Below are positions 3,149-47,056 of a stretch of DNA of 64,000 nucleotides, piece by piece; position 1 is the first letter of the stretch, and every line of letters starts with the position of its first letter. Origin of the DNA: Sminthopsis crassicaudata. Lineage: Eukaryota. The DNA lies in NCBI RefSeq assembly GCF_048593235.1, contig NC_133617.1, forward strand, positions 627,358,958 through 627,422,957, written 5' to 3'. The translations under genes were made by a program, and so were the position numbers. Below the pieces are notes generated by a model, which searched no databases, was not told where the DNA came from, and saw only the letters and a program-made list of their open reading frames with translations.

Positions 3149-6100
3149 TACCCTTTTTACCTGCCTCAAAATTCTTTGGTAATGAATCAGCAGGTGGGGA
3201 TGCACTGGAAGTAGTCACGACCTATTCACAAGAGGCCCAGGGCCTAGGGTTCTCTTCTCACTGTGTTAAAGGAGCAGGGGAATTTGGAACCCCTGGTGTC
3301 TGAGCAGCCACTCTGCTGTGCTTCTGGTGAGGAAGGGGCTAGAAAAGGTGCCCTTAAAAATGGCCTGGTCCACCTAACCTAACCCCTAGTCTGCCTAATG
3401 TGGGTCGTGACTATTGTGGAAAATAATGACTTAGACCCTCTTTTACTTAAACCCCTAGCTTATTTTCAATGAGTGTTATTCAGTTTGGTGTGATTCCATA
3501 GTAATTATTTAGTGATATGCCTTTCCACTAATATATATTCAGTCATTATAATCAACTAGTGTTAAAAGATATTTACATTATTTTATTTGGAGATGATTAG
3601 ATAAGGTAGGATAGATTCTTTCTTGTAATGGGCTTTAAGATTCTAAGTTCAATGTTTGTTACAAAGTTCACTTCCTTGATTCTAATAGGACCTCCACCTT
3701 TCTGCTGAGCAGGTAATCTACTCTGGCATGGTGGAGATGAGTCAATGATATGAAAAATTCCCCATTATTTCTGATGGTCCCTCAATCATTTTGCTGGAGA
3801 AACAGGCCTGTGGGTATTCTGGCCAACAGCTAACATTGTCTTCAAGTTACCAGAGTTGCCTACAGCTAGCTCTCTGTTGGCTAGCAGGGGGCCAGTGAAT
3901 GAGCATCAGCTTGACCAACTTTGGAATCTTCTAGTCACCGATTGTACCCATGAACTGAAGGTTCTTCTGAATGGGCAAGCTATAGATCTACTAACCAATG
4001 AGACTCTGAATTTTACTTTGCCTCAGCTGTATCTTTTGTGTATCAAGCACTGTAAAATTAAGCCCCTTCAAGAAAGGAGCATCTCAAATGGCTCTGCCTA
4101 AGTATCTTTTATTGTAGATTGAGTGTTTTTGACCCTCACACTATCCGACACTGTGATCAAAACAAAAAATGGTGCCATTTTGGTCCTCTTCAAGCATGAA
4201 AAATAATAAGCAGCCCCTTGTATCTCTAGCACAATGCCTGGCACATAATAAGTACTTAATGAATGCTTATTGACTTGACTTGGCTATATAACATGTCTGA
4301 CTCATGTTGAGTTTGTAAAATACTTTAAAAACCTCATTCCTTTCCACTAGAGTTTTTGTCTACTCATATATCCCAGTTTTGTACATGTAAAATTTTTTGT
4401 TTATTTGTTAACCAAAGTGTTGCACTTTAAATTTAATAGAGTAGGAAAAAAAATTAATAAATTTGGTCCACTCTTCTAACTGTTCTAATATTCACAGATT
4501 TGTGCTCATTCATGTTATATACATTCATTCTTCCTCATGGGATAAGCATGTTTCCCAAACATTAAGAACAACAGTACCCTAGAGAGAGCATTTTGCTAGA
4601 GTTCATTCCAGGTTGTATTACTATATCTTATTTTGTAATTCCTATCTTTTTTTACCTATGTCTAAATCTCCCTATCTCCCACATCTGTCTGTCTGGTCCT
4701 CAACGCCATTGTGCTGGATTATATTTTCCAAACTATTAACTGTCAAAAAAGAAAAGAAACAGCCCAGAACTATTTGTCTTTAGAGAACTCATACTGGCAC
4801 ATAGAAATTAGTGACTTTCTTTCTAAGGATCCACAAACCACCCCTTTAAAAATTTTGTCAACAATAAACTTGCTAGAACCAGGAGAATGTCATACACGGT
4901 AACAGCAATATTGTGCAATGATCAGCTTTTATAGACTAAGCTCTTTCTTGTAGTACAGTGATCTAAGCCAATTCCAAAAGAGTCATGATGGAAAATGCTA
5001 TCCACATTCAAAGAAAAAAACTTATGGAGTCTGAGTGCAGATTAAAGGACACTATTGTCATTTTTAAATTTTTTCTTTCTCGGCTTTTTTCTAATTCTTT
5101 CACAACATGACTAATGTGGAAATATGTTTGATATGAGGATACAGGTGTAATTTATATTAGACTGCTTGCCATCTTGAGGAGGTTGAGTGGGATAGATGGA
5201 GGTAGAACAACAATGGAACTCAAAATCTTATAAAAGTAAATGTTGAAAACTTTTACATGTAAGTAGAAAAAATAAAACACTGTTAAGTGGAAAAACAAAA
5301 CAAAACAAAAATAAACTACCTAGCTTACAATTTGAGAATTTGCCTTCCATTATTTTTTCACAGTAGAACATTTGAATGTCTTCAATAACATTTCCTCCTA
5401 TTCCTCGTGACTCTGCTTCGCTACTATTGGTAGTTTGTAATTCAACTATACAAGTCCTTTTAGGATTTTGGGACAGAGTTTACCCTGGCACAGTGGCTTG
5501 ACCATAATTGAGAATAGCTATAACCTATTTATCATTTCATCTGTTTACTTTTCTTTCAATGCCCTGTTAACCATTTTTGTTCAACCTTTCCCAGTCTAAA
5601 GGTCATTCTTCTTGGTAGAGAAAAAAGACAGAAGCAAAATAAATTGAGTAGTTCTTCCTTTTTTCAGTTTTTAGCACTGTCCCATCACCTTGAAGGGTGG
5701 TCCCTTGCTATTTCTTCCTGTTATTTCCATCTTATTTTAAAAAACTATTTTGTGGTCATTATTGTCCTAGATCTTTTGCAGCTTTAGTCTTGGCATTCTT
5801 ACAGATCAGGATGCATTTTTGAATTTTGTCTCGGTTATTTTGCTCATTTGCTTTTCCAAATTCGGTGTTTGTCAGTGATGTGTATGTAACCATTTGGTCT
5901 CGTGAACACATTTTTCTTATTCATGGGAATCATTTATTTTCACCAGCAGAATTTATTCTTGAGGAGTTCCTGCCTCCTCCTTTCCTCTTCCCTCAATCTT
6001 TTGTTCAACAACTCTTCCTTAAGAATTTCATATCTGGGATTCTACCTATCCTTTTTCTGAAATGCTTTGAAATATGGTCTTGTAAAATTAAAGGGTAAGA

Positions 6101-17479: not shown

Positions 17480-20400
17480 TCTTTCCTTGACCAATTTAGA
17501 TAAGAGTGAATATTAGAATTTATCCCCACCCTTTAGAAGCATTTTCCCTAACTTCCCTTTCCCTCTTTCTCACTCCACTCCACTGTGTATTTTTCTGTTC
17601 TTTTAAGATCATCAAGAAATAACAGAGCTACTCCCAATCCTTCTGTCTAATCAGATTCTCTTTGGGATCATCTTCCCAAGTTAGGGAAGGAGTTAATTAT
17701 GATTGTCCATTAATATTTAACTTTTTAATGTTCCTTTAATTAATTCCTGTTTTTGCTTTTTAAAGCTTTTATATCACAATCAGACTGGTTCAATCCATTT
17801 TCCTCCTTTGATTATACTGAGTGTTAATGGTAAGTTGTTCTTGGCTTTAAGCCTATATACTCATATGCATACATATATACATATATTTTGAGGCCTCTTT
17901 TGGGAGATGACCAATGAATCCTCTTAGTTTCCACTTTGTTTTATGGTGCTAAGGCAGTTTTCTTTCAAGACTTATTGAAATAGGATGTCTAATAAGTGCT
18001 TTTTTTGATCATGACATCTTAAATTTTTTTTTCTTGTCAATCTGTTTTCTAGCTCAGTTGTTTTGCTATGAGATTATTTTTTTTCTTTCTTTTCAGTCTT
18101 TTTATTTTGTTTTATTATTTCTGGTTGCTTTATAGAGTCATTGGATTCTATTTGGTCCATTTTAATTTTCAAGGATTTTGTTGCTCAGACAAGATTTTGT
18201 ACCTCTTATACTAATTCCCTTTCCAATTTCCTCCCCACAGTTCTCATTTCTTTTCCAAATTTTTCCTTTTCTCATTTCATTTTTTAAAAATCATTTTTAA
18301 ATTATTTTTTAAAAAATTTCTTCTGGAAATGCTACTTGAATTTGTGCCCAAATTGTATTTTTCTTTGAAGCTTTGCTTATAGATTCCTAGGAGACATCCT
18401 TTTTTTTCTGGAATGGCTGTGTCACCATAATAGCTTTTCATGGTTAGATTTCTTTTTTTGTTGATTTGTTTACTCATTCTTCCAACACTTTCCTTCGAAT
18501 TTGATGTTAAGGGAGCTTTATCCACTACTGAATAAAGTAAGCTTTCAATACTTCTAAGGCTGATCGCTGGCAGATCCTAGTCTGAGCTCTGTAAGTTAAG
18601 TCTGAGCAACAATGGACTGAGGCTCAACCCCTATCAGTCACGAGGAAGCTCTGCATCTACAATCTGGAATTGGGTAGTAACAGAGCTGCCAGTTGGCACC
18701 TGTTCCCAAATCCTGCAGTACCAGGTGCATGTCTTCTCCCTGTCCTGCAGTGCTCCCCATGACATCCTAGTCATACCTCTTCCTCAATGTCCATAGACCT
18801 TTTTTGTCTTTGCATCTTGACCTAGACTGGAAAAATTATTCACTGTGATTTTTTTTCCTTGGATTTTACTATCACATTTGCTCAGGAAGAGATGGAACAG
18901 AGAGCTTGCTGTACTTTTTCCTGCAATTCTGACGTTCTTGGCTCCACTGTCCCCAGATTGATTTCCTGAATGTGACAGTACCGATTCACAGCTCTACTAA
19001 TAGGATATCTGTGTGCCTGTTTGCCCACAGCTCCTCTGATGTTGGTTTTTGACATTTTTTTTTTTTGTCAACTTCGTCAATCTGAGACAGTGCTTTAATT
19101 TGTATTTCTTTAATTATTAGTGATTTGGAACATTCTTTTCACATGGCAATAAAGAGCTTAAGTTCTTCCCTTGAGGACTACTTACTTATTCAGATCCTTT
19201 TATCTTTTATTAACTGAAGAATAACTTTTATTCTTATAAATTTAAACCAATGGCTTACATCTTGTAATGGCTTACAAGGAAATAAGACCTTTTTCCAAAG
19301 AAACTTGCTGCAAAGATCTTTCTTCCAGTTAGCTGTTTCCTTTTCATCTAAGCTATGTTGGATTTGTTTAAAAAACAAAACAAAACAAAACAAAAAAACA
19401 TGTAATTTTATGTAATTAAAATGGTCAGTTTTATCTTCTGTCACCCTTTCTATTCATTCCTTTACTTGGTTACAAACTCTTCCCCTATCCATAGATCTGA
19501 AAAGTAGTATCTCCCTTATCCCTGTAATTTGTTTATGATATGACTTCTTATCTGGGCTAGTCATCCATTTGGAGCTTATCTTAGTTTCAAGGTGTGAGGT
19601 ATTAATCTAAACCCAACTTCTTCCAATCTGCTTTTCAGTTTTTGTTGTTTATTGAAGGTTTTTTGGTTGTTCTTTTAAAATATATATATTTGTTTTTATC
19701 GTTCTTTTTTTTAATGTTGAGTTCTGAATTTTCTCCCTCTATTCATTGAGCACCCAAGCAATATGACAGCAATTATCCATGTGAAATCCTGAAAATGCTA
19801 TCCAGTTTTCCCAACAATTTGTCAGATAATAAGCTCTCATCTCAGTAGCGGGGTCTTTGTGTTTATTGAGCTCTAAGCTACTATTCTTGCTTACTTCTTT
19901 GTGTTGCCCCACCCAGCACTTATTAATAAATGATGAATTAAATTATTGAAAGAAGCAGCTAATCAGTAGAGGGAGAAAGTGTCAGGTAAGGGATGGGAAG
20001 TTGTTTCTTTCCGTGGATCTCATCCAACTTTTCCTCCCAAGCACTGCTGTAGAGAGGACTGGGGCTGCTAAGGCGGAGGCGGAATCCCGGGCCGAGGCTG
20101 CACGGATTGAGGGAGAAGGAGCAGTGCTTCAGGCCAAATTGAAAGCGGAGGCCTTAGCCATAGAAACGGTAAGTGGGAAGCACCTTTAAAGAGTGTCCTA
20201 AAGAAAAGACTCCCTGGTTTGAGCCAAGGCAGGAGAGAAGGGAACCTGGTTAAGAAGGAGGAGGAAATACAGCATCTTTCACACTGTATCCTTCAAACTC
20301 ACATTTTCCAGGCACTTGTCCCTGGTTGGTGCAGAATAGCTCTCCCTCCTTATTTTTCAGGGCTCCACGAAATTGGTATCTTCTGGCATAAAACCCTCCC

Positions 20401-21344
20401 GGACACCCCACCTCCCCAGACCAGTCCTCTGTTCTGTATTCCTGGGGCAGGTGTATTTGCACTGGACCATTCCATACTGCTTCACATGTTCTTATGCATC
20501 CCAAGACCTGAACAGCGCCAGCCCCAAGGGTTGTCCCTCAGGGCCTGAGCTGAGCGCTTTCCTTCTTGCAGGAAGCAGAGTTACTTCGGGTACAAAAAGC
20601 CAGGGAACACGAGCTCGCCTATACCAAGGCCCAGATGGAGCTGGAACTGAGCAAAGCAGAGAAACTGGCTGCAGTGGAGGTTAAAAAGTTCAAGGAGATG
20701 ACGGAGGCTCTCGGCTCCAACACTATCCGGGACCTGGCACTGGCTGGGCCCGAGCTGCAGGTAAGTCAGCTAGGAGAAATGAGGGAGAAGAAATGCCCCA
20801 CTTCAGGTAGCAACAACAGGGACATACTGCAACACAAAGAACCGTCTTCTGTTCTTTCTGAGGGCCAGAGGCTGAGTGTCTTTGGGTGGGAAGGGGAAAA
20901 AATTGCCACTGAGCTGACTGAGAGGGATGACTTCAGACTGCTACTAGAGACAGCCCCAAGGTCCCTTTCAGTTTCAAGGTTACCTGTTATGTGTATAATA
21001 GAAAATCAGAACACCTTTATACAAAGTCCCTGCTATGTGACACTAGGCTAGTTAATTAACTCCCCTTAGCCCCAGAGACTGTTTCTGAAGGGAGGTGGTG
21101 AGGTAAACTTAAAAATTTTTATAAAGGAATTATTTTCCAAGGTCTTAATATTTTATTTCCCTATAATTTTTGTTTCCTTCTCTTATCACAGGTGAAACTG
21201 CTCCAGGGTCTTGGTCTGAAATCAACCCTTATTACAGATGGCTCCACTCCCATCAATCTCTTCAGCACAGCCACTGGGCTTCTGGGGCTTGGGGCACCTG
21301 GGCATCCTACTGAGCTAAAAAAGAAGGAGAACACTGAGCTGTAG
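6687..21344 (+). CDS. MVP: Major vault protein, 5'-partial (12 exons, 762 aa in window)
   Basis: Exons 6687-6810, 7258-7389, 7861-7955, 8591-8827, 8908-9192, 11743-11987, 12093-12290, 12871-13257, 13740-13856, 20042-20168, 20572-20760, 21192-21344(TAG). All GT-AG, phases consistent. Peptides [72 protein letters not shown] and [24 protein letters not shown] are recognisable MVP. The N-terminal exons were not found in 1-6686. Confidence 0.97.
9730..10030 (-). mobile_element. L2 3' fragment
   Basis: aaacatttattaagcacctact...gggatacaaag signature. Confidence 0.6.
12514..12737 (+). mobile_element. Mar-1-type CORE-SINE with RTE/BovB-like tail
   Basis: tRNA-like head, core, then GAGAAGGAAATGGCCAATCACTTCCATATCTCTGCCAAGAAAACCCCAAA. 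Confidence 0.65.
13880..14112 (+). mobile_element. Mar-1-type CORE-SINE
   Basis: Core plus TTTCCTCATCTGTAAAATGAGCTGGAG...TATCTTTGCCAAGAAAATCC tail. Confidence 0.65.
14400..14950 (-). mobile_element. L1 3' end with poly(A) tail
   Basis: T-run 14403-14429 followed by antisense marsupial L1 3' UTR and ORF2 end. Confidence 0.85.
16821..16953. other. Assembly gap (133 N)
   Basis: Run of N. Confidence 0.99.
17427..17476 (+). repeat. (TG)25 microsatellite
   Basis: Read directly. Confidence 0.95.
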
Positions 21345-25739: not shown

Positions 25740-27770
25740 CTGGACACTCCAAGTGTAGTCTTGGGGTAAGGCCTGTACTGAGACTCACCCGGGAAGTATA
25801 GTAGAGCCGAAGGATGGGATTCCCTGTTAGGTCAATAGTTTTATGGCTCTCACTGCCACGGACCACGGAGCTGGAAGGGAAGACATGGGAATATAAAAAA
25901 GTATGACCTCTCCCACTCAAATTCCTACCGGCCCCACTTCCCCCACACATCTTTCTCTTGTTACCATCAGCCACTAACCCTTGGATTCTCTCTGGCCTCT
26001 AAGGAGAAAGGCCCATTCCCCAGTGAGGTGCCTCTAGGACTTCCTCTTTGTACCCTCATTGCAAGTGATCACTAGGACCCCTCTGTAAGTAACTCCGTCA
26101 GTGATGGGGCCAACCCATAATTTCTCAGCCCAGTGGGGTGGGGGTTGTAACCTGTGTAGGTGCAGCCAATGGCTGGCAACGTCCAGACTCATGCTGAGCT
26201 GGAAGAACATGGTGGTCCGAGGGTAGAGCAGAGCTAGGTTGACCAGCAAACACATGGTGGAACATCGATCAGTCAGCATGTCCAGCATTGCCCCAAAACG
26301 GGTTCCTAAATCAAGGTAGAAAGAGAGCCAGCAGTTTAGGATGAAGACAGTGAGAGTGAATGGACCCCACTGCTCTAAACCCACAGATGTGCAGGAACTG
26401 AAAAATTAAGGGTGCTCGTTCTCTCCTGGGCTCAGAGAAGATACAAGTCAGAAACTGCCAGTCCACTGAGATACTAGATCTCATACTGAGATCCAGAGCA
26501 TCTCATTAGGATCTAGATTAGAAGGTGGGGGGGGGAGTGTTCCCTCATGGGGAAGTTAAAGCTAGATTCCTTGCTATCTGTATGACCTTTGCAATGTGTA
26601 CTGAGTCTCTGTCATGTGTAAACAAACACATGGCTTAGAAATGCTGTTCTTGGTCTAAATCCTTATAACTGTCCCAAATATACCCTGAATCCAGCCCAAA
26701 CTGAGGTAAAAGCAGGATAAACGGAATCCAACATCAAAGCCCGAGGTGGATAAAACGTCCCCAACCTAAAGCAAAAATCCAAAACCCGAGAAAGACCCTG
26801 AGCCGCAGCTCTCCACAAGCCTCCAGACTCGGCTGCTCACTAATCCATGGAGCTGATGTAACACGATTTCGGGGCGCCCTGATTTTAGGGGGAGCTTTAG
26901 ATCTAGCAATAACCTAGGCTTGGGAGGAAACTCCCCCGCCAGTGGGACCACTGCTTAGCTTCTGCCTCAGGGTAATCCCCAGAGCAAGCTCAGAGCCCTC
27001 AGGGAGCAGACCACTCCGCCCAGGCAGAAATAATCTAATCAACCAAGCCCTGGAAACCACCTCTTCCGAGCGGAGCCAGAAGTAGCATGGGCGTGATACA
27101 ATCAGGACAAGCTTGTTAGCTAGGGTGATGGGATTATAAGTCGGTGAACTTTGCCCCTAGATCTCATGACACCGGTCTGTGACCCCCAACTTTTGGAGTC
27201 CCCTTTTCAACAAATCCATAGAGGATTCCCCAGGCTTCTCCAAACCTCTTGTTCACTTCATTCCGGGTTTTGCGACTTAACAGCCCGGGCGCTCTGTGCA
27301 GCAGCTAGCAGTTAGCCGGACCCTTCCCGCTTCAGTCCTGCTAGTGCTGAGAGCCGAGCGCGGGGAGGGGTGGGGGCGGGGAGGCAGGGACCCGGGGAGG
27401 GCCCCTCGGAGAGCCACGCCAGGCACCGCTCACCTTGATTCAGGGCCCTGGCCGCGTGTCCGTCGAAGGCGTCCAAGAGCCCGCTAAGCAAGTAGAAGGC
27501 GGAGGCAGTGAACGGGCAGCTGGGCATGAAGTAGAAGGAAACGAGGGCGAAGGCGATCCGCGCGTAACCTGGGACAGGGAGAGGCGGGAGAGAACGGGGT
27601 GAATAAAGAGGCCGCGGGGAGCTCCCGGGCCGGGGCGCCCAAAACCCCGGAGGCACGGGCCGGGGAAGGGAGCACCGGCCCAAGGTCGCGCAAGTTCGGG
27701 GCAGCGCCGGCGCGGGGGTCCACTCACCGATGAGGTTGGGCACGAACAGAAAGATGTTTTCTTCCGGCAT
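25178..27770 (-). CDS. CDIPT: Phosphatidylinositol synthase (CDP-diacylglycerol-inositol 3-phosphatidyltransferase), 213 aa
   Basis: Exons 27770-27728, 27568-27434, 26305-26152, 25870-25789, 25627-25546, 25323-25178(TAA); 642 nt in total. MPEENIFLFVPNLIGYARI start and the CDP-alcohol phosphotransferase motif DAFDGHAARALNQGTRFGAMLDMLTD. Confidence 0.97.
25700..25737 (+). repeat. (AC)19 microsatellite in CDIPT intron 4
   Basis: Read directly. Confidence 0.95.
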
Positions 27771-28420
27771 CTCGGCGAGGGAGATCTGGACGGCTTCTGG
27801 AAACGCGGATGGGGAGCGATCCCCACCTAGACAGCTAAGCAAGCCCCGGTCTAGGGCTACCGAGTCCCCGGCGGCCGCTCCGCCCCTCTCCTCTGTCCCC
27901 CGGGACACCCCGACGCCGACTCTGTGCAGCCGCTTCTTTCGCCCTGGCGCATCAGCAGCTCCGAGGTCGCAGCAGACCCCGCGGCCTCCGCTCCGGGCGG
28001 CACCCAGATGTGCAAGTCCCCCCTGGCGTCCTAGGCATCAGCCGGTGCAGATGTGCAGTTTCCGGCGCCCAGCCGGCCTTCCTCCTGCAGGGATGCAGCT
28101 CCTCTGACGCCGCTCGCTCGGGGCCCAGGGATGGAGTCAAAGGTCTTCCTCTTCACTTTCCTTCCAGTCGTCCCAGCACCGGCTGCGCGGGATAGAGGAT
28201 CCTGAATCCCAGAAATCTGCTCTTCCGCCCGTGCTGACGCAAAACTGGAGGCCAAACAGCGGCTCCGATCCCTTTAAGGCCGGCCCTCTTCCTTTTCCTT
28301 TTCCTTCCTCCTCCCCTCTCCGCCGGCTTGAACCAAGTTCAGAGCGGGGAGGGGGTGACGCGCACAGAGACTAGGAACGAATCGTAAATTCAGAACGGAA
28401 AAAGGTACCGAGGAGAAGTT
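27280..28420. promoter_or_regulatory. CpG island / CDIPT promoter and 5' leader
   Basis: Dense CpG and GC-rich sequence over CDIPT exons 1-2 and upstream; ETS-like CTTCCGCC near 28222. Boundaries approximate. Confidence 0.8.
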
Positions 28421-28859
28421 AGATAAGAACACTATTAACTAATTTTAATTTTTTTTGTGAGTATTTTTCTTAAAAACGAACAAGAGAGACTTATTTTACG
28501 TAACCTACACTTCAAGAACCCACCGGATGAAGCATTTGGTTCAGTCCTAAATCATCCCTTTCCTCCAACTCTGACTCATCCTCTTTTGATCTCAATTACT
28601 TTAGGACGTCAAGGTGGCGGCTAGAGGGTCAGGAAGAAGCTAGAAGGAGATGACTAGAGATCGCCCCCTGGCCCTGGGAGGATATTACTCTTTCAATATT
28701 AAAGCTTATTTGTAGGATAAATAATTCTCCCCGCCCAGCAAGCTGAGTAGTTCTACTGCAGATAATGCTTGAGCGGAGAAGAAAGGGATGCCGGGAAAAA
28801 AGGAAAAGAAAAAAAAAAAAAAAAGATGACTTCGGATTTGACTTCTAGAATTCAAAGGG

Positions 28860-29030
28860 GCTGTCTCCTAGCAACGCGCCGCGGAGCTCCCTCCGCCTGC
28901 GTGGTTCCCGGGGCAACCTCCCCGTGCCACTCTTCCCCTCCCCCTTCCATCCTCCCTGCCCTCTGCGACCGGTAACCATAGCAACAGCAACGGCGGGACT
29001 ACTAGAAAGACCTCCCCGTCTCTCCCCTCC
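28860..29030 (+). promoter_or_regulatory. Small CpG-rich promoter with three RFX X-box motifs
   Basis: GTCTCCTAGCAAC 28863-28875, GTTCCCGGGGCAAC 28904-28917, GTAACCATAGCAAC 28972-28985, plus an extra AGCAAC half-site at 28986-28991. Confidence 0.7.
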
Positions 29031-29404
29031 CGGGCTATAGGCAATTTCTATCCAACATCAGGTCCGGAAAATGGGAAATTGAACCCTTGGGTTTGGGAAA
29101 GGACCCTGAGGACTAGGGGGTGGAGGAGGAGGGAATCAACTTAAGGGACCAAATTGAGGAAAGGGAGGGGGACAGACTGGTGTGAGGGGAAAGTGGAGAA
29201 ATGACCAATGATGGGCTGGATGCCCTAAGGTTTGTGTGTTTATCTGTTGGAAAAAGGAAACCAGAAGGTGGTTTATCCGTACAACTGAAAATAACATCTT
29301 GGGATAGTTCCAGGCCATGCCTGGCCCACACCCTCCAAAGGAAAAAAAAAAGTGGGGCAACTTTCCAACTTAATAGCCCACCTCTCTCTACCTGTTCCCA
29401 GGGG

Positions 29405-31737
29405 ATGGCGTCCAGTCCTTCAGGGCCTCAGGAGAAAAAGGGCACTCTAAATTCACATAATCCCCCTACACCAGCGGTGAGTGCAGTGGGAGGATTGCAG
29501 GGAAAGGGGCAGTTTTCTCCCCCAAAATCAACCATCTGACCCTGGTCCCCTCAACTCTCATCCTTCCTGCAAGGTGTTAACCAGATCTGAGGAGTATTTG
29601 GTCCGTATCAGCACAGAACTTACCAACGAGGCCCTGATGGGAGCCCAATATCCAATAGGTCCTGACCTGCCCAAGGAATTGAAAAAACTGGACCAGGGGA
29701 CTCAGATGTCCCGACACGGTGATCCCTGCTCTAATACAGTGCCCTGAACTCCAGCCCCAAAGTCTACTCCCTAGGAACCCGTTTTGAACCCTGGCAGGCC
29801 CCCCTTTAGGTGCCATTCCCACCTAACATCATACAACCTTACAAGCATCTGTGTTTCATTTCCGTATTCTTGATCTTACTACCCACTCCCTGTGACTAGT
29901 CATTCCAATCCCTTTTTCCCTTTTTGGTCACAGAGACAGGCACTCTTTCTAACTAGGGCCTATGTTTTCAGTGCCGCCAACCACTCGGACCAAGGGCACA
30001 GATACTCGGTGAGAATCCCTGAGGGGAAAGGTCACACCTTAGGGCACTGGGGAATTGAAGAAAGAGAAACAATAGTGTTATATGGGGCTTTTACAAATTG
30101 TTTTATTCATTACAACTTTGTAGGGTTGTGGAGTGCAAATATAATTTTTCCCATTTTACAGATAATAAAACAAAAAAGCTAAGTAACTTGTGAGTACAAG
30201 TGTTATCTTCCCCACTTACAAATAATAAAACAAAAATGCTAAGTAACTTGCTCACAGGTTTAGAAAGTATCAGAACCAGGTCTCGAACCCAATTCTTCAT
30301 GTTCAAATCCAATAGCAGTCTATATTTTACAGGGGTGAAAGGGAAGTAGGAAATGAGAATCCACTTTTGGGAGGAAATATTATGGAGCACTTTAGGTGGG
30401 AAGGAACTTTGAAGAGGGAGTAGCTGGGCTGCACTCCACCATGGAATGCATTTTTACTATGGAATTCATTTTCTTCCTATCCCCATCCTTTCTTCTTCTT
30501 TGTAGTTCTGACAGAAACAGGACCAGAAACAAGACTCATCTCCTGCCATCCAGAGAGATGGTATGTGATAAGATTCTCTTCCAACCCGATGGGTCCTATT
30601 GAGAGCTAGGGATTGTAGAAAGGGATGTGAAAGAGAGATTCTTATGCTTTCTCACTTGAGGGAGGAAACTACAGGAATTCCCCTACCACAGAATAAGAAA
30701 AATTATACTCCAAATCCCAGAAACAAACCAAGCCCTTCTTCTTGCTTGTAATGCTCCAGGTTGAAGATTTTAAAGATGAGAAAGTAAAATTGCTGAAGTC
30801 GAAAGAGAAAGACCTATCCCAACGTAAGCAGGTGAGAAAGAACCAGTTCCCTAACTCTATTCCTGACTAGCACCTGGGAATGGAGTTTTGCATTAATCTC
30901 TATCCCTTCCTAGGTAGAGACTGTACGACAAGAGGACACTCTGGGTGGAACCATGTATTTGACTCCCCGACGGAATGCTCGGAGGTCGACTACAATCCCA
31001 GAAGGCCTCTCTTCCTATCCTTTGAGGAAAGAGCAAGGAAGTATCAAGGTATTTTGATCGTGGCTGCAACATTTTAAGGTAGAGTCAAAGGTACATTAAC
31101 AAGATGGAATTCACCCAAAGAAAGGTAATTAGCATGAGGAGGAGCCTGGAGATCATTTTTATATGTAGCTTTTGAAGGAACTAAGTCTGCCTAGCTTGGA
31201 AGAGAGAAGACTTTGGGACAGATGTGAAACCTGACTTCATAGATTTGAAGTGTTATCGTATGGAAGAGGCAATAGCTGTAATCTGTATTTACTCCAGAGA
31301 GAAGAACTAGACTCAATGGAAGGAAGTGACAGGGAAGGAGATTTCCATTTAGGAAAGATATTCCATCAGAACTGCTCACCAGCTGCCTCAAAAAGCTCTG
31401 GGTTACTAGAAGTGTTGAAGCAAAGACTGGATGACCATCTCTCAAAGAGGTTGTAGGTGAGATTTCTCCGTGGTTGGATGTTAACTCAGATGACTTGTGT
31501 AAGACCCTCTACTACTAAGATTCTGTAGGGGTGCTTTAGGGGTTGGGGCAGGATCTAGGTTTGTGGTGACCAAGGGACAGCAGGTCACAAAAATATTAGG
31601 AGGGACAGAATACTTCCCTCGGAGGCTTTAGAAGCAGACCTTCTTCGACTCCTGACCCAAGAAAGGACCATTTAGGAAAGGGAGAAGGAGTTCACATCTC
31701 TCCTCTCCTCCCTTTCTTCCCTCAGAATGTGGCCTGA
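29405..31737 (+). CDS. Unannotated spliced gene, 151 aa model; candidate orthologue of the CDIPT opposite-strand locus
   Basis: Coding exons 29405-29476, 29574-29718, 29972-30008, 30506-30560, 30914-31048, 31726-31737(TGA). Putative non-coding exon 1 ends at 29061 (CAG|GTCCGG). Exon 2 acceptor ctctctctacctgttcccag, GGGATGG start context, GTGAGT donor. Phases 0,1,2,0,0 join without stops. The exon 4 acceptor choice is uncertain. Confidence 0.65.
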
Positions 31738-31889
31738 AGTCCCTTTCTTCACAATTCACCTGAAAAAATCCTAGGGTGGACTCCTGGCTATGAGTGTCAT
31801 CATCCCCAAGACCCAAAGACTCTCCCAAACAAAGACATTCTTCTTCACTCCCTACAGCCCGGCCATGACACCATCAGGAGCCAAAGACT

Positions 31890-31895
31890 AATAAA
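31890..31895 (+). terminator. Polyadenylation signal of the unannotated + strand gene
   Basis: AATAAA about 150 nt after the TGA, in a terminal exon with a strong polypyrimidine acceptor (ctctcctctcctccctttcttccctcag, ends 31725). Confidence 0.6.
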
Positions 31896-33109
31896 GAGAC
31901 GGGGACCCCCGCCTTCCCCTCCCCCAATTCAGGCAATGCTGTGGTCTGACCTTATCTGAGGAGGGTAATGAGTGGGATATACTATCACTGGTATAAGGGA
32001 GAGCGGGGAACAGTGGATTAGCTCATCTTTAAGGAGTTCTTCAGGTATATGTGATCTATAAGGTAGGTTGTCTAGGACATGACTTTATGAACTTCCACTA
32101 CCACCTTGCTGGAAAAAAAAAAGGCATTCTATTTTTATAGTAGCATTCACTAAAGCTCAGCATCACCATTAAAAAAAAAAAAACACCCAAAAACCCCAAA
32201 CCCAAAACTTGATGAAAAAAAAGCAAATTCTATTTTTATAGTAGCATTCACTAAAGCTCAACATCACCAGCATGTAAAGTGCTTTTGGACTATCCAATAT
32301 TGCAGATTATCTGCTAGGGTTTTTTTGTTTGTTTGTTTGTTTTGAAGCTTGCATTGCTATTTTTATTTTATCAATAATAGGTATGTTTTTACATAGTGCT
32401 TTTTCCCCCTTTCCCAAGAGCTCAAAGTAGTTTATGCAAATCATCTATCCATTGTCACATTAGCCTTGAACCAGAAAGAACATCATCTCTCTGAAAGAGG
32501 AGAAATCTGGACTGAGCTCACAATACCCATCTAAGAGGTAGATTTGCTAGGGGTTTCTAATCTAATATCATTGATAATTGACTATTTTGAAGTACCTATT
32601 ACTTTGTATTCTCTCCCAGAATCTCCCTCATTAACTAACATAGTCAGCTGAGGGTTGGTTATAGAGCACTGAGCTCTGAGGATAAGAGGAGTTCCCAGCT
32701 CTCCTCAAAAGTTACTATGGTGGAATGGAAAGATATCAAACACAGGAGGAATCAGGGGACCTTGTTTCTCTGCTCTTAAGTTAGTGGACTTGTAGAAATC
32801 ACTTTTACTTTTCTAGGCCTCTTTTTCTTCCTTCAGCTGTACAATATGTGGTGAGATTGGATGATCTGGAAATTCCCTTTCATTCTCAAAGCTCTTAATT
32901 TCTCTCTGAAGGGCTGTTGCCATTAGATCTTCAGTTAAGCATTCAGAGAGTACTTGCTCCAAGCCTCAGTTGAACCTACTCGGCTTCCATAATAGTAGGA
33001 AGTATGGTCTTGTTTTGCCATTCCCCCAACAAACTCTTCTGCTCCCTCTTCCCACTTATAAGCTGCCCCCACCATAATACTGGGCCCAGTTACAAATGGT
33101 GATTCTCTG

Positions 33110-33115: not shown

Positions 33116-33851
33116 GCTTGAAAACAAAAATCCAGAAGCCAGGAGTAGTAAAGGGTAGAATTGGGGGGAACCTGAAGGGAGGGAGGGATTGCAGGGGTTA
33201 GGGGTCATTTCCCTAGCCCTCCCTACTCTTACTCTGCTTAGCCAAAAGACTGGGGCTATTGGGCAAAAAGGGGCTGCCTGGAGCTCTTGGCCTGAAGGAG
33301 CAGTGGGTAGGGAAGAGCAAAAAGAAAATCCAAGAATGGATAGTGCTGGTAGGACAGGAGCTTGTGTGGCCAGGAAACTGGAAAGCAATGAGAGCCACCA
33401 GAGAACAAGGAAAAAGTTGTCGAGCCCTCTGAGATTGATCCCTGTGGTAGTCACAGGGACAAGTAGGTTAGGACCTGGACTAAGTAAGATATATTATCCC
33501 TCTCCCCTTATGATTGGCCCCAATGCTAAGTAACCAAGGGACAACCCTGTATTTTAGGGCTGGGGAGCCAGATTATGGATATAGGAGGCAGAAGGACCCC
33601 CTACATTTGGCAACAGAGAAAAAGGATGACTTGGGAGGCAGGATGCTGGCTTATTTTTACCAGAGGATCTTCAGGGTATTTATTGTCCTTAATGGGGTCT
33701 TAGGGTATTTACAAGGAGAAGGGAGAAGCATGAAATGTCGAGAGCTGGGAGTGGAGGATCCAGTTCATTTTACTTCCTCCCCCTTCCCAGGTTGGTCTGG
33801 GGGGAGAGGTCAGGAAGGGACATCTAAAAGTTCTTCTCCTTCCATTGGTGC

Positions 33852-47056
<13,205 letters not shown>

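Follow-up and report, generated by a model that had tools for sequence, protein, structure and literature searches.

The DNA opposite CDIPT raises a question: does a marsupial keep an intact coding gene at the position where the human genome holds a locus classed as a pseudogene, and what protein would such a gene encode? We addressed it in a 64,000-nucleotide (nt) stretch of the dunnart Sminthopsis crassicaudata (NC_133617.1:627,358,958-627,422,957, forward strand, assembly GCF_048593235.1), hereafter the window, in which all positions are counted. A preliminary description of this DNA had proposed a hidden spliced gene of 151 amino acids (aa) opposite CDIPT, the intact orthologue of a gene lost in humans. 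The orthology is supported, and the gene model is partly wrong. With little room for doubt, the locus is the dunnart orthologue of T-ENOL/Cdiptos, a small coding gene lying head-to-head with CDIPT; a role in sperm or cilium under RFX control enters this reading as a guess and is graded on its own below.

Identity and exon plan of the locus

The locus is composed of nine exons: one non-coding, seven coding and one carrying the 3′ untranslated region (3′ UTR) (Table 1). Translation of the seven coding exons yields a 224-aa protein that matches XP_074157763.1 / XP_074157843.1 letter for letter (LOC141561699, "uncharacterized protein", Sminthopsis crassicaudata), and the gene is therefore already annotated. 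It is not hidden, as had been claimed: with this identical RefSeq product and with models in at least ten other marsupial and monotreme species, the locus already stands in RefSeq for the dunnart and about a dozen further non-eutherian mammals, and its novelty as a gene discovery is low.

Family membership is carried by sequence searches, gene order and exon borders. Exon 3 alone (48 aa), searched with phmmer against 1.84 billion representatives, retrieves 28 proteins, 26 of them family members, with expect values (E) of 1e-4 to 1e-6 for eutherian and 1e-7 to 1e-8 for monotreme members. A profile search retrieves 157 proteins; the 120 matches listed are from mammals only, and match names include "putative protein T-ENOL", "CDIP transferase, opposite strand" and Cdiptos. 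Matched proteins measure 196-243 aa in marsupials (sugar glider, tammar, koala, wombat, Dromiciops, opossum, bilby) and 184-209 aa in monotremes. The gene lies on the strand opposite CDIPT, head-to-head with it and upstream of the SEZ6L2 3′ end, as expected of the family; the order CDIPT (-), gene (+), SEZ6L2 (-) recurs in devil, antechinus, wombat, hare and sloth, and the CDIPT side of this arrangement is the only one visible in echidna and Dromiciops. Exon borders and their phases fall at the same residues in echidna (…SRH/V…, …DTR/SD… and …M/(V or G)EDF…; a slash marks a junction here and below). The hare has the first two of these borders in common, the 72-nt exon being undetected in it. 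Comparison from monotremes to eutherians leaves 16 residues unchanged. Together with selection acting in the frame (see below), these matches bear out the proposal of an intact marsupial orthologue of the CDIPT opposite-strand gene.

Assembled RNA contigs support the splicing. An RNA contig from a run bearing the window's own organism label contains the joint 29061/29402 with GT..AG ends, which places the 3′ end of the non-coding first exon at 29061 and shows use of the acceptor at 29402; 28936, by contrast, marks only the beginning of the contig and leaves the 5′ end unfixed. The joints 29476/29574, 29718/29972, 30008/30506, 30560/30760 and 31456/31726, all GT..AG, come from contigs of a definite RNA-seq run with devil-matching letters. 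That run carries three Tasmanian devil coding differences (P to S at 29661, S to L at 30800 and T to S at 30951), and most of the splice evidence therefore derives from a sister species at ~5% divergence; in the Tasmanian devil, every splice site of the gene is conserved. A contig beginning 12 letters ahead of 30912 hints at a junction upstream of exon 6.

The six blocks of the preliminary description (29402-29476, 29574-29718, 29972-30008, 30506-30560, 30914-31048 and 31726-31737) have AG acceptor and GT donor borders, all of the GT..AG type, and join in phase from the ATG at 29405 into a stop-free frame of 151 codons, exactly as quoted. The strong start context and ATG-free first exon that it reported were likewise recovered: the start codon sits within GGGATGG, with no earlier ATG in the spliced RNA, and 28860-29061 is free of ATG. 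The downstream AATAAA was also found, at 31890. The 151-aa model is incomplete, omitting two conserved exons, one of 72 nt and one that ends the coding sequence. The 72-nt exon is present in the models of 10 of 11 other marsupial and monotreme species, being skipped by the bilby model, and has identical borders in echidna DNA.

Table 1. Exons and regulatory features of the T-ENOL/Cdiptos locus in the dunnart window
Feature	Position	Strand	Evidence
Coding sequence, 224 aa	29405-29476, 29574-29718, 29972-30008, 30506-30560, 30760-30831, 30914-31048, 31298-31456	+	translation identical to RefSeq protein
RFX X-box-like cluster, three sites: 28863 GTCTCCTAGCAAC, 28904 GTTCCCGGGGCAAC, 28972 GTAACCATAGCAAC	28863-28985	+	motif search
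Exon 1, non-coding	28936-29061	+	RNA contig joint 29061/29402, GT..AG; without ATG
Exon 2, start codon 29405	29402-29476	+	RNA joints 29061/29402 and 29476/29574; translation as in XP_074157763.1
Exon 3, best-conserved part; helix SEEYLVRISTELTNEAL and DQGTQMSRH motif	29574-29718	+	RNA joints on both sides
Exon 4 (…TRTKGTDTR)	29972-30008	+	RNA joints 29718/29972 and 30008/30506; kept from monotremes to eutherians
Exon 5 (SDRNRTRNKTHLLPSREM), near-invariant in mammals	30506-30560	+	RNA joints 30008/30506 and 30560/30760
72-nt exon (24 aa, VEDFKDEK…SQRKQ), phase 0-0, open	30760-30831	+	RNA joint 30560/30760
Exon 6, 45 aa	30914-31048	+	in frame; AG/GT kept in five marsupials; aligns to echidna and platypus
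Terminal coding exon, 52 aa, TAG 31454-31456 directly before the donor	31298-31456	+	RNA joint 31456/31726
Last exon; 3′ UTR in the 224-aa form	31726-31910	+	acceptor 31726 used in RNA
Polyadenylation signal AATAAA	31890-31895	+	kept in five marsupials

Selection on the reading frame and forms of the 3′ end

Alignment of the locus among five marsupials (dunnart, devil, antechinus, wombat and Dromiciops) reveals coding exons that keep their length, frame and AG/GT borders, the exceptions being one in-frame 9-nt deletion in exon 6 of Dromiciops and the exon 4 acceptor of wombat. None of the frame-breaking indels in sister marsupials that would contradict an intact gene was found in the coding exons. 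Against wombat and Dromiciops, gap columns number 0 and 9 (in frame) per 675 nt of coding sequence versus ~350 per 1,900 nt of introns, and substitutions reach 9-12% in coding sequence versus 20% in introns. The ratio of non-synonymous to synonymous substitution rates (dN/dS, Nei-Gojobori) is 0.30-0.39 against these two species (p 2e-4 to 3e-5), below 1 as the preliminary description had expected of a gene, and 0.24-0.25 between the window and the two other dasyurids, with an overall range of 0.24-0.45. The survival of CpGs in the exons that it had pointed out also holds, with an observed/expected ratio of 0.41 in coding exons versus 0.12 in introns and with four of the five CpGs in exon 6 (30914-31048) lying within Arg CGN codons. 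The echidna gene has identical exon borders, those of the 72-nt exon and exon 6 included. As read from aligned sequence, the frame is shown to be held by purifying selection across marsupials, with an exon plan common to monotremes.

At the wombat exon 4 acceptor (matching window 29970-29971), AG is replaced by CG. The wombat RefSeq model carries 17 extra in-frame residues ahead of exon 4, which would fit splicing at an upstream acceptor or retention of an intron.

Marsupial annotations end the protein in two ways. Exon 6 is joined either to the 52-aa exon ending …LSKRL, followed by the 3′ UTR exon, or directly to the last exon, producing NMA… or NVA… tails of 24-55 residues. The models of tammar, wombat, Dromiciops, opossum and koala (isoform X2) read through the second kind of tail. 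Its fourth codon (window 31735-31737) is TGA in the three dasyurids (dunnart, devil and antechinus), whereas wombat reads CAA and Dromiciops CGA, and frameshifting indels lie downstream of the dasyurid TGA. With this stop, the direct route therefore gives 175 aa, or 151 aa when the 72-nt exon is skipped as well; to judge from these codons, the NVA-stop ending is an ancestral tail shortened by a TGA common to the three dasyurids. A further acceptor at 31858 is the counterpart of the one used by devil isoform X2.

The terminal coding exon (159 nt) is open and has an identical stop in wombat and Dromiciops, though the models of both species leave it out; it shows no amino-acid change among dasyurids, and the models of sugar glider, tammar, koala and bilby include it. 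We considered whether it is a young exonised repeat, as short pieces of it attract foreign contigs, and rejected such a recent origin, since the window holds no second copy and the exon is conserved and open across Australidelphia. An old repeat origin is possible. Three pieces of ~35 nt (30132-30171, 31235-31269 and 31405-31440) draw contigs from elsewhere in the runs of all three organisms, and these contigs have loose ends on either side. The pieces are fragments of dispersed repeats, the last of them lying inside the terminal coding exon.

That the exact six-block transcript is the product, skipping 30760-30831 and joining 31048 directly to 31726, is improbable. Its blocks do join in frame, loss of the 72-nt exon keeps the frame and has a precedent in the bilby model, the acceptor at 31726 is conserved, and a junction of the 31048-to-31726 type is used in the koala, wombat, tammar, Dromiciops and opossum models. 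The RNA confirms the joints 29476/29574, 29718/29972 and 30008/30506, but neither of the two joints peculiar to the 151-aa model, 30560/30914 and 31048/31726, is among those listed, whereas 30560/30760 and 31456/31726 both are. The RefSeq models of dunnart, devil and antechinus hold both extra exons, and both are conserved and constrained. Further still from acceptance is the view that the locus makes only a spliced non-coding RNA, or is a pseudogene in decay as in human CDIPTOSP, its open frame an accident. The pseudogene or long non-coding RNA (lncRNA) class of the human counterpart, the want of a known domain, the mostly disordered protein model and the TGA shared by dasyurids in the alternative tail would all fit it. 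We regard it as very unlikely because an open reading frame of 224 codons in a spliced RNA of 989 nt arises in only about 1 in 10,000 composition-matched simulations, because the five marsupials have no frame-breaking indel against hundreds of gap columns in introns, because dN/dS is 0.3-0.4 at p values down to 3e-5, and because exon borders and phases agree with echidna, the phases being kept, as are the invariant residues, from monotremes to eutherians.

Several observations weigh against a coding T-ENOL/Cdiptos gene in the dunnart. Most joints come from the devil-matching run and not from the window's own species. The same runs include unspliced contigs, and since all contigs are strandless, the orientation of the transcript rests on the GT..AG ends. 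The junctions 30831/30914 and 31048/31298 are absent among the joints listed. Constraint at dN/dS of 0.3-0.4 is moderate only, with exons 2 and 6 evolving fast, and we infer translation from evolution only.

The neighbouring genes in the window are MVP on the + strand at ~20000-21000, CDIPT exons on the - strand at 26034-27908 and sushi/CUB exons of SEZ6L2 on the - strand at 35200-38500. Downstream of the polyadenylation signal, at 32110-32270, two direct copies of a ~40-nt unit (…ttctatttttatagtagcattcactaaagctca…) each follow an A-rich run.

Protein features, promoter and candidate function

The 224-aa protein has no match to a Pfam family, in line with the earlier failure to recognise a domain, and neither sequence nor profile search found a solved relative. 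An AlphaFold model based on an alignment of 14 sequences reaches a mean predicted local distance difference test (pLDDT) score of 53.5. Its only confident helix spans residues 28-48 (block-mean pLDDT 76-93); two further helices are modelled, a weaker charged one at 101-132 and one at the C-terminal end, 205-223. The conserved parts of the protein are the predicted amphipathic helix 28-48, a basic stretch rich in Thr and Arg, TRTKGTDTRSDRNRTRNKTHLLP (residues 73-100), and the DQGTQMSRH motif. The protein is predicted to be mostly disordered, and it would most likely act through partner binding and not as an enzyme.

A search for the RFX X-box consensus GTNRCC(N0-3)RGYAAC on both strands of the 64-kb window revealed a cluster of three sites at the promoter. 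The site at 28972 is the only perfect X-box in 64 kb, those at 28863 and 28904 having one mismatch each; five of the 20 matches with at most one mismatch fall inside this 125-bp cluster (both strands counted). The region 28861-29061 is the best-conserved non-coding stretch of the locus, 6% diverged compared with 20% for introns. All three sites are kept in the five marsupials; the echidna alignment takes in sites 2 and 3 (E 7e-9), and a partial one to sloth takes in sites 1 and 2 (E 3e-5). The match to echidna suggests a regulatory module older than the therian-monotreme split. The separate CpG promoter of the preliminary description corresponds to a small CpG-rich patch at 28800-29000, with an AT-rich dip between it and the CDIPT island.

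The echidna promoter (echidna locus 4682-4830) aligns to the X-box block of marsupials, with GGTTCCTGTGGCAACCT and GTCCCCATAGCAACAGCAAC retained. Between the CDIPT CpG island and the X-box-bearing promoter patch, 28800-28826 is a long A-run with an AG-rich lead-in, treated as a repeat and left uncovered in the read alignment. A putative-RNA run covers the whole locus unspliced and is deepest upstream of the X-boxes, at 28300-28790, where the contig of deepest coverage extends ~2.6 kb further left into CDIPT. This coverage could reflect DNA carry-over, transcription from the CDIPT side or a start site further upstream.

Expression in sperm or ciliated cells is suggested because a conserved RFX X-box cluster stands at the promoter. 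RFX factors would activate the gene in spermatids, in multiciliated cells or in both, and the T-ENOL/Cdiptos protein would serve the flagellum or cilium programme. We advance such expression, with a cilium or sperm role, as a tentative proposal drawn from promoter sequence, possible but short of probable. Somewhat more doubtful, though a serious contender, is that the gene is coding and its X-boxes have nothing to do with cilia or sperm, perhaps serving the shared CDIPT promoter region or another RFX role, with the protein being, for example, a basic nuclear or RNA-binding one. RFX1-type sites occur at many non-ciliary promoters, and the basic Arg/Thr/Lys stretch is equally compatible with a nuclear localisation signal. 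X-boxes with at most one mismatch were not found in hare or sloth. A search of ESM Atlas features gave nothing usable outside the family, its hits including CIMIP4/TEX33, SPATA6 and CENPJ at 0.66-0.69; these matches to testis and cilia proteins lie below 0.75, within the noise level, and count against the proposed function, as does the absence of strict X-boxes from the two eutherians. Mouse testis RFX2 chromatin immunoprecipitation sequencing cuts both ways: binding at the neighbour Cdipt is a lead towards RFX control, yet the peak is assigned to Cdipt and not to Cdiptos, and Cdipt is not differentially expressed in the Rfx2 knockout (PMC4498915 Table S1). On the other side, the cluster lies ~800 bp past the core of the CDIPT CpG island, across the AT-rich dip and in one block with exon 1, and its three sites per 125 bp have been kept for >60 million years in marsupials, two of them as far as monotremes. 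The literature on Cdiptos, CDIPTOSP, CDIPT-AS1 or T-ENOL together with cilia or testis yielded gene lists and one chromatin-insulator study only, and our search found no paper about the T-ENOL/Cdiptos protein.

Comparison with known orthologues

Searches of hare and sloth DNA, the two eutherian loci checked, recovered neither the 72-nt exon nor exon 6. Eutherian proteins have only exons 2-5 in common with the dunnart protein and are shorter, at about 119 aa. On this comparison the non-eutherian protein appears to be the longer form, with two exons lost in eutherians. Weak tblastn matches in hare and sloth near the SEZ6L2 end (E 0.05-0.6) were considered as exon 6 and rejected; they correspond to a probable SEZ6L2 3′ UTR element homologous to window 33566-33728. 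This element, just past the SEZ6L2 coding end, is matched by hare at 75% over 89 nt and by sloth at 67% over 166 nt, and the hare and sloth counterparts are 75% alike over 283 nt. From its similarity it is probably a conserved SEZ6L2 3′ UTR element.

A broader history can be sketched, which we consider possible though rather uncertain: T-ENOL/Cdiptos would be ancient, mammal-only among the matches here and RFX-driven in sperm or motile cilia, with two to three ancestral extra exons lost in eutherians and the gene itself then lost in humans. If this is true, marsupials are the place to learn the role of the full-length protein. The residual value of the locus is comparative, a human pseudogene against a longer constrained version in marsupials and monotremes, and the locus falls in the segment that corresponds by synteny to the human 16p11.2 copy-number interval. 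A conserved RFX-type promoter gives this unstudied family a function testable in mouse or dunnart.

The RefSeq entry LOC141561699 is no different in sequence from the protein described here, its record being without a name, an orthology statement or a function. Devil LOC100929721 (X1/X2) differs from dunnart at four residues and antechinus LOC127556323 at six; identity to orthologues is 97-98% in dasyurids, 67-84% in other marsupials and ~47% in monotremes. Marsupial and monotreme orthologues (devil, antechinus, koala, wombat, tammar, sugar glider, bilby, Dromiciops, opossum, echidna and platypus) have a common exon plan and neighbours, and the marsupial ones vary at the C-terminal end, carrying either the 52-aa exon or the longer NMA/NVA tail. 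Eutherian T-ENOL/Cdiptos (Swiss-Prot ENOL_RAT) has homologous exons 2-5 with the same borders (profile E 1e-29 to 1e-53) and the common invariant motifs SEE.L…EAL, DQGTQ and TDTRSDRNRTR, but is mostly 115-160 aa long and diverges after …HLLPSPR. The human counterpart is classed as a pseudogene, in agreement with the preliminary description: PMC11211608 gives the locus between CDIPT and SEZ6L2 as "CDIP transferase opposite strand, pseudogene". Human CDIPTOSP, formerly CDIPT-AS1, produces a spliced transcript of ~0.6-0.9 kb over ~4.4 kb in the CDIPT-SEZ6L2 interval (PMC11211608) and is classed as a pseudogene or lncRNA in the literature; the dunnart gene at the same position keeps an open frame of 224 codons.

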